From Lepidodermella squamata (lineage: Eukaryota > Animalia > Gastrotricha): 64,000 bases of DNA. The stretch spans positions 1,364,001 through 1,428,000 of the forward strand of contig JBLDXI010000074.1 of NCBI GenBank assembly GCA_047495785.1. Reading direction: 5' to 3'. The notes below the pieces were generated by a model. The model was not told the origin of the DNA. It saw nothing but the letters and a program-made list of their open reading frames with translations, and ran no database searches. Positions 12,019 through 55,324 of this stretch are shown one piece after another. Position numbers and translations under genes: made by a program. The number at the start of each line of letters is the position of its first letter. Positions within the stretch are counted from its first letter, which is position 1.

Positions 12019-12845
12019 ATGATGTTGGGTTTTCGAGGTGACACAGCTGACGAGGCTCTATTGAAGCGGGCTGTTTGATTCTTTTTGATTCAGGTGTTTT
12101 TGAAACCCTAATAAAGCAACTAGATTGGTTTATTCACGTCAATTTTTTCTCAAATTAGCATGTATACAGTTCTTAACAGAGGCTGATGACGTACATAAAT
12201 TTGGTCGTTTAGACTGTGGAGTGGGTCGTGGTCGTGGGTAGTGGGTCCAAGCAAGCTCACCCTCAAATCTTCCAAACCTGTCATCTTCATCATCATGATC
12301 ATAACACGCGGCATTTGAAAGTAATCCTTTAACATTTTTCTGAGTCATTATTTTAAAACACGATATTTTAGCAAGATACTTGTGCAGTTTCGAGTCATTT
12401 TATTTCATTAAGATGTTATAGTTCCGGCCACAAAGTTTCGGCCACAAAGTGGCCATCGTCAGGCAATATCTAAAAACAAACAACAAGATGAAAAAGTCAT
12501 CAGCAAACAAGCTGGTAAGGTCGCTTTGGGTTTGTCGTGCAACGCGAATGATGCAGCGGAGACTGCAAAAGGATACAGGGTACAAGTTGGATTCGATGCT
12601 GAAGCAAAGCAAAGAATTCTTGAATTGACAGGAATCGCAAAAAAACAGCCGATAAAGCTTCATTAAAGGCAAGGCTTCGAGAGCAGACAGTGTTAGAATT
12701 GCAGGATATGAGGATTCAATATTCAAAGCTCTCATCGCCTCTTTGATTCGCGGCGGTTAAGTACTTGGTTGATATTAAATTTAATATTCAGAAAAATTAA
12801 GGCTGTCAAAGATTCGCCATGAGAAAAGTCTGATATCATTAAACG

Positions 12846-45815: not shown

Positions 45816-47219
45816 ATCTGCTAGTTCACTACTACTACCTAGTGTTGTTATTTCCCCTGTGGTTTTGGTCTCATTGTTCAAGTCATTTTACCGACGGCAA
45901 TTATTGGTCTCTTTTTAGCGTCCCTCTAGTCTAATTTTGATTCGATTCCACGCACAGTTGATTGATTGATTGATTCCTCTCCTGTAGGGTAGCTACGCTT
46001 TTTCCTCGCTTCATTATTCATTGTTGTGATATTTACAAACAACACTTTATTTTTTCATTGTTAATCGACCGATGACAGCTGCTTGCGCTTTGTTTACACA
46101 TGAACTGCTTATTACTGACAACTCCGGTTTTTTTCATTCATCGTTTTTTCATGCGTTATCAGCGGTGATGGGTTATGTGCAATGCCAATTACTTCATTCA
46201 TCTTGTTGTGTTATTTCGAGCCAAATTTTATTCTATGCAATACAATTGACTGTGAATATATCAATTTTAAGCATTTCTATTTATCGGAAATCTGGTGATG
46301 GGCTATACAATAAAAATCGAATGCATTTGATCGTGAGTTCTGTTTCCTTGGTTCACATACCAGTCCTCAATGCAGACATCGTACTTTGAGTTACCAGCAG
46401 CGAAACAATTTGCAACATGATATCAGGTTTCCCGGTCGTTCCTCTCCGATGTAGTCCAACAGCTGTCAGCGCTGCTGAGTTAAAGTATATCGTATAGATC
46501 CGTATAAGTACTTTCTCATATCCTGAAAAGGACGCATCTTGGAAAGGCATGAATCAAGCTAAGCCCAGCAAATCACCTTTCATCGGCTGCTAATAATCAA
46601 GACGAAACAACGTCAGTTCTATCATTTTGCTTCGATCAACGTGGAGAAATGAAGCCGAGCATCGACTCCCGTATACTCTTAATTTTACCTGTCTAGTTGC
46701 CGAACACTCGGAGAGACACGGCCAAACCGAGGCACCGCAGGTAAGCAATGATTCAATAAAGGCCCAGGTCTTCTGATAAGAATGCGCGGTTTATCAGTTT
46801 TCGAAGGACTGTGGGTGAAATTCTATTGTGTGCGTCTCCGACGAAGGCAAACTGTTTGTAGCAAACTTAAAAATCTTGGGGCAAAACTTTAAAAAAAAAT
46901 AAAAACCGCGCGCAAAATCAGATGTTGACATTCACAATAAAAAAAATTAAATGAATAATTTGATGTTGAATTTGATTTTTTAAGTATTTCATAGAAATTT
47001 GTAAATTAGGCGTCCTTAGAGATGTAACACCTGTTTCCGTTTCGATCAAATGGCTCTTGCACTGAGACCGGTGCATGTTTCATGCAAGTGTGCGTAACGT
47101 GAAATTATCGTGACCGGCTCGTAAATATTTCATGAGCTTTCAACTAATCTGCATCTCTGAGCACCTATTTGTGCTAATGTGACTTTCTTCTTGCAATACC
47201 ATTTCAGCTTGCTGCTATT

Positions 47220-47726
47220 ATGTCCGAAGAGAGATTTTCTCCGGAAAAAGCCAATCAATATTTTGGCCTCGGTCCGAATGATGAGCTGGTTGCTGTTCAG
47301 AAAATAGAGATGGGCGGCTCCGAAAACCGCTTCATGATCAAACTTGTTCATAAGTTCAAAGGTCTTGAAGTTTACGGAAGCGGTGCTGTAGTTTCGGAAG
47401 ACTCAGAAGGGAAATGGACAAAGATTGACTCTTCCGCGACGGTGAAGAACATCAAAGACCTAGCCGCTGCGATCGACTTTGAAAAGCTGCCATCAGGCGA
47501 TACCTCAGTGTCACTTTGCAAGGACGAATGTAAAACAGCTGAGCATGCCCACTTCAAGCAACGCTACCTGTACATGGACGACAGTATGCCAGAATTAGCT
47601 GGCAAGCTTATCGTTGCCGATGAGGTTGTTGTGAATCTCGAGCCTGGCAACAGCAAAGCTTGCTTAGTGGATGTTTGTTCTAAGAAGATGTTCAAGAGCT
47701 GGAAATGCTCCTGTGGACCGAATTAA
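47220..47726 (+). CDS. Stand-alone thermolysin/elastase (M4) propeptide-like protein (FTP + PepSY), no catalytic domain
   Basis: FGLGPNDELVAV, HKFKGLEVYG..VVSEDSEGK, TVKNIKDL, YLYMD and LVDVCSKKMFKSW follow the motif order of bacterial M4 propeptides; intronless CDS; 5' UTR intron 46741-47207. Confidence 0.72.
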   Translation: MSEERFSPEKANQYFGLGPNDELVAVQKIEMGGSENRFMIKLVHKFKGLEVYGSGAVVSEDSEGKWTKIDSSATVKNIKDLAAAIDFEKLPSGDTSVSLCKDECKTAEHAHFKQRYLYMDDSMPELAGKLIVADEVVVNLEPGNSKACLVDVCSKKMFKSWKCSCGPN

Positions 47727-47896
47727 CTATCATCTCTATCCCTCAGTAATTGATTGTTGAATCCTTACGTTTACATTTATTTTCTTTATATGACACTCTA
47801 GTCTCATTTTTCTTTCACCGCTTAATCGAGAGAATGAATTAAACTGTTAAATTATTGAAAAATTATTGTTTCATAGTGGTTCGTAAGACTTGAGTA

Positions 47897-50800
47897 ATGG
47901 CTTGTTGTGCTCCTGCAAGTACTGCCGCTGCGAGTAACAAGGTCGGAGATGTGAACACAAAGTTAGAAGAAAAGTACAAGTCTTTCGGCGAACCATATCA
48001 AGGCTCTTTTGACGGACCAGTCAAATCAAGGTCTGAAAATGCTGCAAATTCAACTTTTATCTATGAGTTTTACAATAGATCATGTACCGATTGCGCTTGC
48101 TTGATTATCTACTTGATTTTCACCCTTGTCGGCTTTGCTGTAGCAATTTTTGGTTTGTAGCCGCAAAAAATTTCGGTAATCGATGAAATGCGTCTATTTT
48201 ATTCAGCTTACTATCGCGGAAACCCTGCGCTTCTCGCGTATCCAACGGATAGCCAGGGAAGAATGTGTGGATTCAATCAGTTAGCTGATAGGCCTAATCT
48301 TTTCTTCTTCGACTTGCTGAAATGTGTGAGGAATATCGATTCTCTGCCTTTCACCGGCTGCCCAACAACTCAGGTGTGCGTGAAGGACTGTCCAGGTCGA
48401 GATCAATACTTCTCATGGCAAGCTCTAGCCGTGATTGAGAGCCGATCAGGGCCTATTGCAGCTGTTCGAGCTAGGCAAATGATTTGTATTGACAAGGTCG
48501 ATTTCACGAATAACACGTGGCTGTCAATCAGCGTAAATCGGCTGATTAGTGACGGCTACTGCGCGCCTTATACAATACCTCAAACACCTGTGCTAAATCG
48601 ATGCATGCCGACTTTCATCGTCGAGGCGATTCAAGGCTCAGAACCGGAAATGGTGACAAATGTCACGATTTACGACGCATCTGGCAACGAAATCAAACTA
48701 TCAGATTTAGGCGCGTCGAAAGCCGCGTTTGAAGCTCTGTTGAAAGTTCAAGCCTGGGGCGAGAAAGTGCTGCAAGATATTCGAGCCTCCTGGCCACACA
48801 TTCTCTTTTTCGTCGGATTTTCACTGGCCTTCGCGTTCATCTGGATTTTGCTGCTGAGATTTATTGCCGCCGTTGTGGTTTGGACGACTATTGTTCTGTT
48901 TTTGCTCATGTGGGTCTTCGCGGTGGTTTTCGCGTTCTGGCGCTACAATCTTGTCGCTCATGTTATCGATATTCCAACGCCGCCAGGTGAATTGGCGAAA
49001 TTCACAGCCGCGATTTCGTTTCAAAGCTCATTCGACTCAGTAAGTTATAGTTAAGGCATATAGTTCAGCCAGAAATTCAAATTGGAAATTTAAATTTAAA
49101 TAATTTTGGATATTTTTTTATAAATTGAAAACAACCTCTATGAAATTTGAAATTTGAATGATGAAATCGAATATTGACATTTTCAGCCTCAACTTTGGCT
49201 CGCTGTCGCGATCATCTGCGGCATAATCCTGCTGGTCTGTTGCATTCTGCTGTGTTTCTTGGGCTCTCGCATCAAACTAGCCGTGAAACTGTTCGAAGAA
49301 ACGTCCAAAGCCCTCGGCCACATGCCCTCGACCCTAGTTTGGCCGTTTGTACCCTTCGCTTTCGAAATGGCAACCATAGCTTGGGCCGGGGCGGCTGCGA
49401 TTTGCTTGGCTACGCTCGGCCGAGCTCAATTCATAGGCCAACAGCCGAATTCAACTTACAAGGTAAAAATCGGTTCAGATGAAAGATGATTTATGCGAAA
49501 ATTCAATTTTGAAGCTATTTGAACCCAGTTTTTAAATTTTGAGAGATGCATTATTGTTCTTTTAAATTAATCTCAGATTGTTCTAAATTTTTCTAGGGTT
49601 TGATTCCACTTCCCAGTGAAATGACCGACTGTGATTACACGCAGCAATTGACGCGAATAGCAAATTTCAGCGAAAATGCCGTCTCGAAAATCGAAGGCGC
49701 CCTCAACGTTAATTTCTACGCCAATTCGGCCGAAAACAGCTCAAGCGTATCGATGCGAGCCGTCGCCGCCGTCAACAAAACCCTCGTCGACATTTGCCGA
49801 TTCTTGAACTACGGCGGGGCGGAGTATGCGATATATTTCCAGATCTACAACGCTTTCATGTTCTTCTGGCATTTCAACTTCATCTCGGGCATGGGAGTCA
49901 TCATTTTAGCCGGCTCTTTCGGCTCCTATTATTGGGCCTTTCACAAAGTAAGACCTTCAATCATCATTTTTTGAAAAATAATTGTTCGAAAAAGTCATTT
50001 TATAAAGTTGAAATGATTGTTTGAATTCTTTTCCGCAGCCGGAAGATATTCCACCGTTGCCGCTGTTGAAAGGCTTTTGGAACGCAGTTCGCTATCACAT
50101 GGGTTCGGCCGCGTTCGGCTCGCTGCTGATTGCCATTGTTCAAATTACGCGGCTCATTCTCGAATACGTCATGTTCAAAATGAAAGGAACTCAAAACGGC
50201 GTGGCCATGTTCATTTTAAAATGCCTGCAATGCTGCTTCGGCTGCCTAGAAAGAGTTAGTCCAAGCAAAGTCTTGAAATGCTGATATTCCGAAATTTTAA
50301 TTTTGATGAGATCCTGCGTTAATTCTATCTTTACTATGCATAACTGGTTTGAAAATATCTTTTTTTCAGTTGGTAAAATTCATCGCTCGGAAAGCGTACA
50401 TTGTCGTGGCAATTCACGGGAAAACTTTCTGCGCCAGTGCGAAAGAAGCCTGGGGTCTAATCATGCGCAACGTCGTTCGAGCGGCCGTACTCACCGGCGT
50501 GACGCGATTCCTCATTGTCATTTCCATTCTCATCGTTTGCGGCGGCATGAGTAAGTCATTTTTAATTTTCACTGGAAATTAAATTTGAAACATGTCTCAA
50601 GTTCAAAATTATTTGCTAGTATTGTGTGAAAATTTTAAAATTGCGAATTTTATGAATAAATTACGGAAAGATGTAAGACTTTTCTTATTTTTTCAGCTAC
50701 ATTCTCGTTCTTTTACTTCCACGGTGAAATACCGGCCGGTATTCCGATTTTGGTGCGCACGTGGCCTACGCTGAACTTTTTCTACGCCCCGGTGATCGTC

Positions 50801-51631: not shown

Positions 51632-54600
51632 ATGGGTGACAACAAAGTTAACGACATCAGTGCGGCTGAGGACAAGAAAGCGAAAATGCTAGGTGAGCCC
51701 AATGCCAAAAATCAACCATGTATGACAATCTCATTACAGGTGAACCCTACAAGCATGACCCAGATTTCAAGGGTCCAATTAAGAACAGATCATGTACAGA
51801 TTGCTTGTGTTTACTAATCTACATGATCTTCGGTCTTGCCAGCATTGCTGTGGCGATATTCTGTAAGCTCCGCCCCTTTTCGCCAACCATTGACTGTGTA
51901 ATCTCTTCCATTAGCTTACGCTCGAGGCAATCCAGCGTTGCTCATGTATCCAACTGATAGCCAGGGTAAAGTCTGCGGCTACAACGAAATGTCGTAAGTC
52001 AACTAAATTACTGAGCAATTGAAATAAAGAAAACCGTTCGAGTTTATTGGTTACCTCAGAGATAGATGGGTGTCAAGTTTTGTCACCTGTTGTCACATGA
52101 TGCGAAGTTTGTGTCCCATGAGGAAGATTTCATTATAGAAACAGATGTTTTCTGTTAGATTTAGAAAAAGCTCACTAAATTCTGGCAGAAATTTGGAAAA
52201 GCCATCCTAGAAGGTGGGAGGTTAATTTTTCCTCGCTTTCCACGTTCTCCACATACCGTCAGATGGGGCGACTTTGGACAGTGGGGTGACATTGCCACGG
52301 AAAAATGGGGCGACTTTCGCATAGCCATATCTCAGAGGTATCAAGATAAAGACCCCTTGAGTGGGATACCGTTGGAAAGCCCGAGAAAAGACCAACTGGA
52401 ATGTCTTGAACATACTTCAGCCTTTAACAATACCTGGTAATTAAACACAGGTAAAGTTGAGCGAAAAAAATACACTTTTCGGCAGAATATAGATGACTCT
52501 AAAGTCGACCAGGTGTGCTCAAAATGAAAAGACCTTGTCATTTTCGAGCAGCCCCCGACACAAGCTATCCAGCGGTACCCAACTTGTGAGGTATCCACCT
52601 TTCCACCTGCGGTTTGAGTTAGGGCAAAGTCACCCCATCTGCATCTAAACCGTACTCAGGGTCACTTAGCCACCCTTCCACGTCATTAATCAAGGTACAT
52701 ACGACCCAAAAGGTTCCACGACGTATATAATTAAATTCTCCATCATCAGGGCTTTCCATTGACATCCTACTTGACATGTATCATGTCTGAGAAAATGACG
52801 TCGTGTGTAATCTAAACTCGATCGCAAAAACCTATGGCAATGTAACCCCCATGGCCAAAGTCGCCCCATCTGACGGTACTTTTCAAAATGTATATTGTTG
52901 GGATTTTCAGGACCCGACCGAATCTGATGTTCTATGACTTGATCCAATGTGTTCGAAACATCCCATCTCTACTCGCTGGCGGGTGTCCCACAACACAGCA
53001 ATGCGTCAAATCGTGCCCTTCAACCAGTTGGTCGTGGTACACCCTGCAGGCTGAAGAATCCACTTACGGCGTCAACGTCGAAAAACGCAAGCAACAACTG
53101 ACCTGCGTAGACCAGGTCGACTTCACCAAACCGCAATGGGCGGCTTACAAGCTGTCGGATCTTGTTAAAAACGGGCAATGTGCTCCGTACACGATTCCGG
53201 AGAAGCCGATCGTCTACCGATGCATGCCTGCATTTCTTGTCGATACAGTCAACGCGGCTACGGCCTGGAACGAAACTCTATACGATGGCGACAAGAACGT
53301 TGTAACGGAATCAGCTCTTACGGCTTCGAAAGAAGTCTATTCGATACTCATGAAAATCCAAGGCTGGGGAGACAGAGCTTTAGCTGACATTCGAGTTTCA
53401 TGGCCACACATGGTTGTCCTCTGTACAATCGTAAGTGCATTTTATCGATTGTATGAGGCTCCTGTACCAAATTTTGACAATTTGAATTCATGATTAGGCG
53501 TTGGTGTTTGCGTTTCTGTGGATCGTCCTGTTGAGATTCGCTGCTGGAGTCATCATATGGACCACAATTGTCCTGTTCATGTTGATGTGGATCTTTGGCA
53601 TCGCATTTTGCTTCTGGAGGTATAATCTTCTGACGAGGGTTGTCGACTGGACCCCGCCGAGCAACAGTGAGTCATTCGAAAAGTGCGATTGTCCGTTAAT
53701 TACATGATTCATTATAACTTAAGCCTTTACCGATGCTCTCTCGTTCCAAACAAATTTCGACTCGGTAAGATGATGAAAAAATGTTGAATCAAAAGGCCTC
53801 ATTCATTTTCCGATAGCCTGATCTTTGGCTTGGAGTTGGAATTGTTTGTGCCATCATTTTCCTGGTCTGCACAATTGTGCTGTGTTTCTTGGGCTCAAGA
53901 ATCCGCCTGGCAGTAGCTTTGTTCGAGGAAACCAGCGCAGCCTTGGCCAATATGCCATTCTGCCTTTTCTGGCCTCTCTTTCCCTTTGCAATCCAGTTAG
54001 GAACTGTAGCATGGGCTGGCGCTACAGCTGTTTGTCTCGCTACACTGGGCCGAGCTCAATATGTCGGAAATTCTGGAAACTCTACTTACAAGGTTGAAAG
54101 TTATGAAATGAAAATATATCCTTGCTCAACTTCGTTTCTTTTTGAAGGCCCTCATAACATTTCCAGACAGCGTTTCATCTTGTGATTATACTTGGGCATT
54201 GACTACAGCAGCTCAAACTGGAACTTCTATCGCAAATTCAGCGACAGGTCTCGTGAATTACAACCTAAATGCTAGCGCAAACAACGCCGCGGTTTCCTCG
54301 GTCGTATCAGCGGCTAACAACACACTGGCTGAAGCTTGCCGGTTTCTGAAATACGGCGCAGCGGAGTACGCTGTCTATTTCCAACTTTTCAACGCCTTCA
54401 TGTTCTTCTGGAACTTCAACTTTGTCGGATGTTTCGGCGTTGTAACTCTAGCTGGAGCCTTCGCAACGTATTATTGGGCTAGGGAAAAGCCAGCTGACAT
54501 TCCTAAAATGCCGTTAATCTCTGGTTTATGGACGACAATGCGATACCACATGGGATCTGTTGCTTTTGGGTAAAAGATGATTTGAAAAAATCAAATTATA

Positions 54601-55324
54601 TCTAATAATTTTTGAGTTTTTTTAGGTCACTTTTGATCGCAATTATGCAAATTTTGCGTATAATCATGGAATACGTAATGTATAAGATGAAGAAGAACCA
54701 GAATAACGTAACCCAGTTCCTGTTACGATGCGTTCAGTGCTGCTTTGCCTGCATTGAGAAAATGGTGAAATACATCGCTCGAAAAGCCCTGATTATGGTC
54801 GCAGTTCATGGCAAAAACTTCTGCGCCTCTGCTATGGAGGGATTCCAGCTGATAACTCGAAACGCAGCTAGGGCAATAGTTTTAACTGGCGTTACAAGAT
54901 TCCTGATAGTTTTATCGAAGCTAATCGTAACTGGAGGGATGGGTAAGCTGTTATTTTCCATATAAACGCAATTTCACAATTTCACAATTTTTATCAAATA
55001 TTTAGTCACCTTGGCCTATTTTTACTTCCACGGTGAAATTCCTGGTTCATCACCTGCTTTAGCATCTACTTATCCTATCCTCAACTACTTCTACGTACCG
55101 GTGATTGTAAGTTCAACTTTTAGCCCTAATTGTCGCGTTTAAAGTTTGTTTTTCCGCAGATTGTGAGTATCAGCAGTTTTGTGATCGCGACAGTTTGTTT
55201 TCACGTTTACGAAATTGGTGTCGAAACGCTGTTTTTAGCCTTCCTCGAGGATCTCGAACGAAACGACGGTTCTGCTGAAAGGCCATACTTCATGACCAAA
55301 AGACTGGCTGTTTCTCTCCGCTGA
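51632..55324 (+). CDS. Choline transporter-like protein (SLC44), paralog B (~757 aa)
   Basis: Same motifs as paralog A; exons 51632-51692, 51740-51862, 51915-51993, 52911-53430, 53498-53666, 53724-53764, 53817-54092, 54148-54569, 54626-54942, 55006-55106, 55160-55324. Confidence 0.93.
52256..52876. mobile_element. Intronic Tc1/mariner-pogo-type MITE (TA TSD)
   Basis: TA-ccgtcagatggggcgactttgg ... ccaaagtcgccccatctgacgg-TA, a 22-bp perfect TIR with internal sub-repeats. Confidence 0.88.

Follow-up and report, generated by a model that had tools for sequence, protein, structure and literature searches.

The propeptides of M4 (thermolysin-type) proteases are foldases and tight inhibitors; once autoprocessing has taken place they remain on the mature enzyme, their C-terminus lying in its cleft, and they can fold and inhibit the enzyme in trans. 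Several M4 proteases are virulence factors. A propeptide homologue can also be encoded on its own: yeast PBI2, a stand-alone inhibitor resembling the subtilisin propeptide (I9), is cytosolic and guards against vacuolar proteinase B. Stand-alone propeptide-like inhibitors are likewise known for cathepsin L-type enzymes (I29; PMC4089206). The M4 proteases themselves are characterised in one account as almost exclusively bacterial (PMC7851659), and the literature that we searched on M4, FTP and PepSY in animals or rotifers described neither a gene consisting only of an M4 prodomain nor an animal M4 family. Here, we consider ORF168, an open reading frame in a 64,000-nucleotide stretch of the genome of the gastrotrich Lepidodermella squamata (the window, within which positions are given), which lies on the contig labelled C74 of a 121 Mb assembly. 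ORF168 is very probably a stand-alone M4 prodomain gene. The explanation that we think best overall, and on balance probably right, is that it is a free prodomain from the animal's own M4 protease family which, by analogy with the bacterial propeptides, would most likely bind M4 catalytic domains.

Homology and predicted fold of ORF168

ORF168 runs uninterrupted from ATG to TAA over 168 codons (stop codon 47724-47726), as the original prediction for this locus had it, and its motifs had been seen to follow the order of those in the FTP+PepSY prodomain of M4 proteases. Direct searches returned little. A word-index protein search gave no match, an exhaustive phmmer search of 1.84 billion representative proteins gave no true one (the sole match, P0001, was rejected as a repeat-protein artefact), and a metagenome contig scan with ORF168 as a single protein found no relative; a PDB sequence search with ORF168 alone and an NCBIfam scan produced noise, and a word search with the prodomain (aa 1-200) of an M4 protease encoded on contig C1 of the same genome produced nothing. 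With first-pass searches so nearly blank the motif match was unproven by itself, and it is the animal's own genome that settles the matter. By BLASTP, residues 15-166 of ORF168 are colinear with residues 22-193 of a 676-aa C1 M4 protease (E 3e-5), and the region matched is exactly the part that precedes the catalytic domain. A family hidden Markov model (HMM), built from seven prodomains attached to M4 enzymes in this genome and excluding both ORF168 and its paralogue on C16, gives ORF168 38.0 bits (E 2.5e-10), the paralogue 25.4 bits and the best of 4000 shuffled versions 6.6 bits. Identity to the protease-attached prodomains is 19-25%. Weak matches elsewhere in the genome, on C38 and C59, fall in frames of 389-434 aa that are unlike a prodomain and were rejected as chance.

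The link to the bacterial enzymes is seen at the level of profiles and of shape. Aligned by hhalign with three bacterial M4 prodomains, the own-genome family matches with 91.9% probability (E 7e-7) over 145 columns that extend as far as GGN, the start of the mature enzyme, and the nearest ESM feature clusters of ORF168 are FTP and FTP+PepSY proteins (score 0.93, 182-183 shared features). AlphaFold2, supplied with a 14-row alignment of the own-genome family, one metagenomic M4 protein and three bacterial prodomains, predicts four strands (21-31, 37-46, 49-60 and 66-71, the FTP half) followed by a helix and four more strands (pLDDT 86.1, pTM 0.77). As the original prediction had anticipated, the top Foldseek matches to this model in the PDB are the propeptide chains 3nqz_A and 3nqy_A of autoprocessed vibriolysin MCP-02 (TM 0.70, 166 columns), followed by the fungalysin propeptide 4K90_B and then by YpeB and YpmB. 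VIA-align ranks them similarly, with Z 13.2 for 3nqz_A (151 residues) and 11.5 for 4k90_B, unrelated rows lying near Z 5-6; the PepSY proteins 4exr and YpmB match residues 86-163 at Z 8.9-7.6. In the ESM Atlas the top shape matches are bacterial M4 peptidases (TM 0.70-0.78, 152-157 residues) and one stand-alone FTP protein. The reading of ORF168 as a thermolysin/vibriolysin-type FTP+PepSY prodomain is thus supported by four lines that we treat as independent, namely the family profile, the profile-profile comparison, the language-model neighbours and the predicted fold.

The PepSY-like half contains the family-conserved C100, RYLY, ADEV and CLVD. ORF168 has six cysteines in all, as originally counted (residues 100, 104, 148, 153, 163 and 165), of which C100 and C148 form the pair conserved in the family and C104, C153, C163 and C165 are absent from most of its members. 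The C-terminal end could be placed by a profile search of PDB sequences, in which the last strand (LVDVCSKKMFKSW) falls on residues 180-192 of LasB pro-elastase with W161 on W192; the profile alignment to LasB 180-202 sets G166 at P1 and P167 at P1'. LasB is cut between H197 and A198, and ORF168 therefore ends two residues beyond the equivalent position. The original claim that the frame stops exactly where the mature enzyme would start is therefore right as to the junction, with an exactness that extends only to within two residues. An SW-x-C motif in the tail is common to ORF168, to the candidate last exon of the C16 paralogue and to one C1 M4 gene. Judged by sequence comparison and predicted structure, ORF168 encodes a complete M4 FTP+PepSY prodomain and nothing else.

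Transcription, constraint and surroundings of the gene

ORF168 lies whole under one 703-nt contig of run X1 (Table 1). We treat this run as RNA by inference, from a poly(A) tail at 46330, from GT..AG joints in the downstream gene and from the lack of contigs on intergenic DNA; its source, whether strain or species, shares about 98% identity with the window. The original prediction had allowed for two contrary outcomes, a silent locus and a transcript joined to a catalytic exon. The gene is represented in X1, and since the contig is colinear through the stop, the transcript is not spliced to a catalytic exon before that point. The nine coding differences between ORF168 and X1 comprise eight synonymous third-position changes and one replacement, S2T, with a pN/pS of 0.033 (P 2.7e-5 under neutrality). 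These data bear on whether ORF168 might be a functionless leftover of a partial M4 gene duplication, transcribed by chance. It is lineage-restricted, with no orthologues found, and the M4 family does include broken copies (some C1 matches have internal stops), as such a leftover would lead one to expect; but the frame is intact, the pN/pS is low, the fold is predicted confidently and start, size and end are all preserved in a paralogue that is about 32% identical, and we find this explanation scarcely credible. ORF168 is a real, transcribed and selectively constrained single-exon gene.

Contigs of X1 and of a DNA run, X2, also depart from the window sequence after 47800 and rejoin it at 47793. 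The 8-bp overlap (47793-47800) is like a target-site duplication and suggests an insertion allele between ORF168 and the next gene, in the 3' UTR or intergenic DNA; the insert is probably a repeat element, its re-entry letters resembling window positions 12372-12401 (26/30).

The gene structure originally proposed upstream of ORF168, a 5'-UTR exon and an intron, is not supported. The X1 contig reads through the proposed acceptor, its 54 letters further upstream matching 47161-47188 (24/28) as colinear DNA; no X1 contig lies on 46336-47170; and in X2 an allele at about 40% of the depth carries a 55-bp deletion (46694-46748, replaced by AGC) that takes out the proposed exon together with its donor. 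A search for nematode SL1, on the reading of the tttcag acceptor as a trans-splice site, gave no match, and the controls were silent too.

The same region matters for the question of secretion. The N-terminus of ORF168 has no hydrophobic segment (maximum Kyte-Doolittle mean 1.06, 9-residue window, first 40 aa), and with so hydrophilic a start the protein is without a signal peptide, in agreement with the original prediction. One could suppose instead that a signal-peptide exon spliced to the acceptor at 47207 was missed, and that ORF168 is a secreted inhibitor or chaperone which encounters M4 enzymes within the secretory pathway or extracellularly. There is a good acceptor (catttcag) in frame 12 nt 5' of the ATG, the six cysteines, including the conserved C100/C148, would suit an oxidising compartment, and in the C16 paralogue an in-frame ATG further upstream leads into a hydrophobic stretch. 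However, the read-through of the acceptor, the lack of X1 contigs further upstream and the deletion allele count against such an exon as they do against the UTR one; in addition, an in-frame stop stands at 47175-47177, 15 codons 5' of the ATG, a scan upstream gave no exon that combines an ATG, a hydrophobic peptide and a consensus donor, and both paralogues start at the same point (MS....PEK.N..FG.GPN). We consider a secreted form of this kind improbable.

As originally stated, no catalytic domain adjoins ORF168: there is no HExxH in the plus frames of 46000-49000, and whole-genome six-frame scans gave no Peptidase_M4 or M4_C match on C74. The neighbouring genes are animal-type on both sides, again as claimed. 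Upstream lies a proprotein convertase (Peptidase_S8 and P_proprotein exons), whose transcript bears the poly(A) tail mentioned above, and downstream, from 47897, are two tandem choline-transporter-like genes, then a teneurin-type EGF-repeat gene further on. The transporter-like genes are of SLC44 type and occupy 47897-50000 and 52888-55000; GT..AG introns of the first, at 49040-49186 and 49461-49594, are borne out by RNA-type contigs. The case against contamination loses the argument drawn from the UTR intron and is carried by the genes on either side, by the introns of the paralogue and by the large size of the contigs, which together place ORF168 in the animal genome.

Table 1. Positions of ORF168, its parts, the DNA around it and its paralogue (window coordinates except where a contig is named).
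Feature	Position	Strand	Evidence or remark
ORF168, single-exon coding sequence of a 168-aa stand-alone M4 prodomain protein (very probable assignment)	47220..47726, stop included	+	ORF list, HMM, AlphaFold2 (AF2), pN/pS
Gap-free stretch under one 703-nt X1 contig: leader, whole ORF168, stop, 74 nt of 3' UTR	47182..47800	+	RNA-type run X1
Proposed 5'-UTR exon (46690-46740) and intron (46741-47207), best treated as promoter/intergenic DNA	46690..47207	+	X1 and X2 contigs
FTP half (residues 16-71, approximately), with the FGLGPN motif and, after it, four beta strands, HKFKGLEVYGSGAVV among them	47265..47432	+	Pfam FTP, AF2 model, alignment with MCP-02 and fungalysin propeptides
PepSY-like half (residues 86-163, approximately), made up of helix 93-104 and four strands	47475..47708	+	AF2 model, VIA-align
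C-terminal tail WKCSCGPN, placed where a propeptide has its final segment before the autoprocessing site	47700..47723	+	Profile alignment to LasB
Second stand-alone prodomain gene (loci L002, L003)	C16:507969-509856	minus	About 32% identical to ORF168

The M4 proteases of the genome and the origin of ORF168

The genome holds about 20 M4 protease genes, six-frame scans having placed Peptidase_M4/M4_C at some 8-9 loci on C1 and at least 10 on C13, and nine C1 loci carry a prodomain of the ORF168 type. The 676-aa C1 frame already mentioned (L022:1012-3039:-) comprises Peptidase_M4, Peptidase_M4_C and a PPC-like end, and with its HEIGH and NEAFSD zinc motifs intact the M4 proteases look active; at least one C1-type gene has an upstream signal-peptide exon. 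The closest relatives of the catalytic part of the C1 protein are two metagenome proteins (44-51% identity), one of which has the same prodomain type, and the next are bacterial M4 enzymes (32-40%) from Myxococcales and other metagenome-assembled genomes. P0002, a 673-aa metagenomic M4 protein (L036, an ENA metagenome scaffold of 4917 bp), shares 44% identity with the C1 enzyme as well as its type of prodomain, and contains stretches rich in Asn and Asp. A related eukaryote is its probable source, in which case the M4 family is not limited to this genome. 

The M4 loci (L019-L055) lie at about 1.058, 1.863-1.876 and 2.157-2.183 Mb on C1 and at about 3.08-3.63 Mb on C13. Genes of the C1 type, about nine in number, are laid out as signal peptide, FTP/PepSY prodomain, M4, M4_C, Thr-rich linker and PPC-like end, and some copies have internal stops. 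The C13-type genes, of which there are at least 10, begin to match the C1 enzyme only at the HExxH region; their first exon, with a signal peptide and an FTP-like part, is their own and divergent.

The C16 paralogue, an old one, is informative about descent. Six-frame scans gave no M4 catalytic match on C16, so far as that contig is concerned, and the gene shares its start with ORF168. Its first intron is in phase 1 and lies directly after EVYSS; in the alignment, this place is also that of a phase-1 intron in a C1 M4 protease gene, L031, where it follows VWNS, and the agreement in place and phase points to a derivation from an animal M4 gene that had introns. ORF168 is without that intron through either loss or retroposition. 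Exon 2 of the C16 gene ends in a strong donor (AGG followed by gtgagt), and 782 nt downstream is a candidate 8-codon exon (C16:507969-507992, minus strand) reading KKKSWQC-stop, which resembles the KSWKC tail of ORF168, three of its codons being a poly-A run. With this candidate last exon the C16 protein would have about 169 aa and would end at the same point as ORF168. The hydrophobic stretch that follows the in-frame upstream ATG of the C16 gene (MIHATTPPNLISSICCLLCNIL...) could be a signal peptide or an AT-rich leader.

ORF168 is closer to the M4 prodomains of its own genome than to bacterial ones, and on these sequence relationships its origin within the M4 protease family of the animal itself, which is expanded and contains introns, appears well supported. 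The original prediction had left the choice between a horizontally acquired and a protease-derived prodomain, and the M4 genes, the closer prodomains and the common intron favour the latter over a separate transfer. Such a transfer would have brought in, independently, a stand-alone FTP/PepSY gene of bacteria, one with no relation to the M4 proteases of the animal. ORF168 is intronless, and its nearest ESM clusters are stand-alone bacterial FTP(+PepSY) proteins of 147-254 aa, one of which is also a shape match. Against this, the animal's own M4 prodomains score ORF168 at 38 bits, whereas the 1.84 billion representatives held no true match, and the paralogue has an intron of the same position and phase as an animal M4 gene. 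The prodomain tree, proposed as a check from the outset, joins ORF168 to the C16 protein (79/99) among the eukaryotic prodomains and keeps both away from the bacterial ones, a placement that also speaks against a separate acquisition. As no branch is well supported, we draw from the tree neither a donor nor an order of events. Taken together, these data make a separate acquisition very improbable.

Possible function and comparison with known systems

If ORF168 behaves as the bacterial propeptides do, it would in effect be a ready-cleaved propeptide. It would most likely bind the catalytic domain of an M4 protease in trans, with its PepSY/FTP body on the enzyme and its tail, WKCSCGPN, in the active-site cleft. 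More speculatively, ORF168, having no signal peptide, would be active in the cytosol, where it could, in the manner of PBI2, guard against an M4 protease that was misrouted, leaked or delivered by bacteria. It is also speculation that the tail, with cysteines at P4 and P2 and a proline at P1', may act as a pseudo-substrate that cannot be cut, possibly with a thiol-zinc contact. That ORF168 works as an M4 binder or inhibitor is suggested by analogy, and we put it forward tentatively, as something short of probable. The fullest version of this proposal is that the animal, having domesticated a bacterial-type M4 family, evolved its own cytosolic inhibitors of thermolysin-type enzymes by splitting off a prodomain and dropping the signal peptide, with the SW-x-C..GP tail plugging the zinc site and one of its cysteines close to the metal in the manner of a 'cysteine switch'; this we regard as doubtful.

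A different possibility is that the FTP+PepSY fold was kept as a scaffold and now binds some other cytosolic partner in place of an M4 protease, much as the bacterial PepSY protein YpeB keeps SleB, an enzyme that is not a protease, in an inactive state. The signal peptide has been lost, apparently in both stand-alone paralogues, the divergence from the protease-attached prodomains is strong (19-25% identity, as above), and the four extra cysteines are missing from most of the family. PepSY proteins with non-protease partners are known (PMC13556211). Yet the whole prodomain has been kept, right up to a tail whose end coincides with the processing site; an M4 gene also has the SW-x-C motif of that tail, and the same genome offers some 20 potential M4 partners. 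We think such a change of partner, the strongest of the competing readings, rather unlikely, if worth keeping in view.

The preferred reading, a free M4 prodomain that most likely binds M4 catalytic domains, has several observations weighing against it. Some concern the homology. The profile check that the original prediction proposed gave a Pfam FTP (PF07504) match on residues 42-71 of 17.7 bits (E 0.0031), under the 21-bit cut-off, and for PepSY (PF03413) no match at E<=10. Genuine bacterial M4 prodomains do no better, however, scoring 16.7 (P0004), 22.7 and 44.8 bits with FTP and matching PepSY in none of four cases (E<=1), so the FTP score, though under the curated threshold, falls inside the range of the family and is no argument against membership, and the PepSY profile is insensitive here. 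The structural model is not independent of the homology claim, since bacterial prodomains were in its alignment, and a single-sequence AlphaFold prediction was unusable (pLDDT 42). The word index, the phmmer search of representatives and the metagenome scan gave no orthologue outside this genome, and long-term conservation accordingly rests on one paralogue and one strain comparison. The expression evidence is one assembled contig from a related strain, in a run whose RNA nature is itself inferred. Others concern the function: the M4 enzymes are secreted, whereas ORF168, having no signal peptide, does not obviously share their compartment, and the inhibitor role is put forward by analogy.

Set against the systems already described, ORF168 is nearest in shape to the bacterial M4 propeptides, for which vibriolysin MCP-02 (3NQY/3NQZ, chain A) and LasB (8CR3, 9GM4) can stand. 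It has the same FTP+PepSY fold over its full length (Z 13.2), the same order of motifs, a C-terminal W-containing strand that falls on LasB 180-202, and an end at the autoprocessing position. It differs in being encoded alone, without a signal peptide and by an animal gene, in an identity of 15-18%, and in a tail with two cysteines and a proline at P1'. The C1-type M4 prodomains of the same genome (for example that of L022:1012-3039:-) are direct homologues, with the conserved cysteines, RF/YxY, ADxV and CLxD..W in common; they continue into Peptidase_M4, M4_C and a PPC-like domain, and at least one is preceded by a signal-peptide exon, neither of which applies to ORF168. The bacterial stand-alone FTP/PepSY proteins (YpeB, YpmB and the ESM Atlas clusters of 147-254 aa) superpose on the PepSY half (Z 7.6-8.9), and a 234-aa stand-alone bacterial FTP protein is a shape match (TM 0.76). 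These proteins are mostly membrane-anchored or secreted, and none has a detectable sequence relation to ORF168 closer than that of the animal's M4 prodomains. If ORF168 is not an inhibitor, an FTP+PepSY protein without a signal peptide in an animal cytosol would be a clean case of a prodomain with a new job.

Stand-alone I29 and I9 inhibitors and bacterial stand-alone PepSY/FTP proteins were already known, and what appears to be new, judging by the literature searched, is a prodomain-only M4 gene and an M4 family in an animal, in a genome with about 20 M4 genes and two genes (on C74 and C16) that are homologous to prodomains yet separately encoded. The I29 inhibitors CTLA-2alpha, Drosophila crammer and Bombyx BCPI, which resemble the cathepsin L propeptide, embody the same principle of a prodomain gene used as an inhibitor in trans, and PBI2 is cytosolic and without a signal peptide, as proposed for ORF168. 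In CTLA-2alpha one cysteine is essential for potency, which we count as a likeness to the cysteine-bearing ORF168. The folds and protease clans are unrelated, so that the analogy is one of function and of kind only, and for M4/thermolysin-type enzymes the papers searched describe no counterpart. If the two genes do encode inhibitors, they would be the first endogenous propeptide-derived M4 inhibitor family. They would supply a drug-target class with naturally occurring protein inhibitors and would offer a natural scaffold for use against LasB, vibriolysin and other virulence proteases, and a horizontally derived enzyme family would be seen to have gained host-made regulators. A third, unrelated protease clan would then have repeated the route taken by CTLA-2 and crammer with the cathepsins and by PBI2 with subtilisin.

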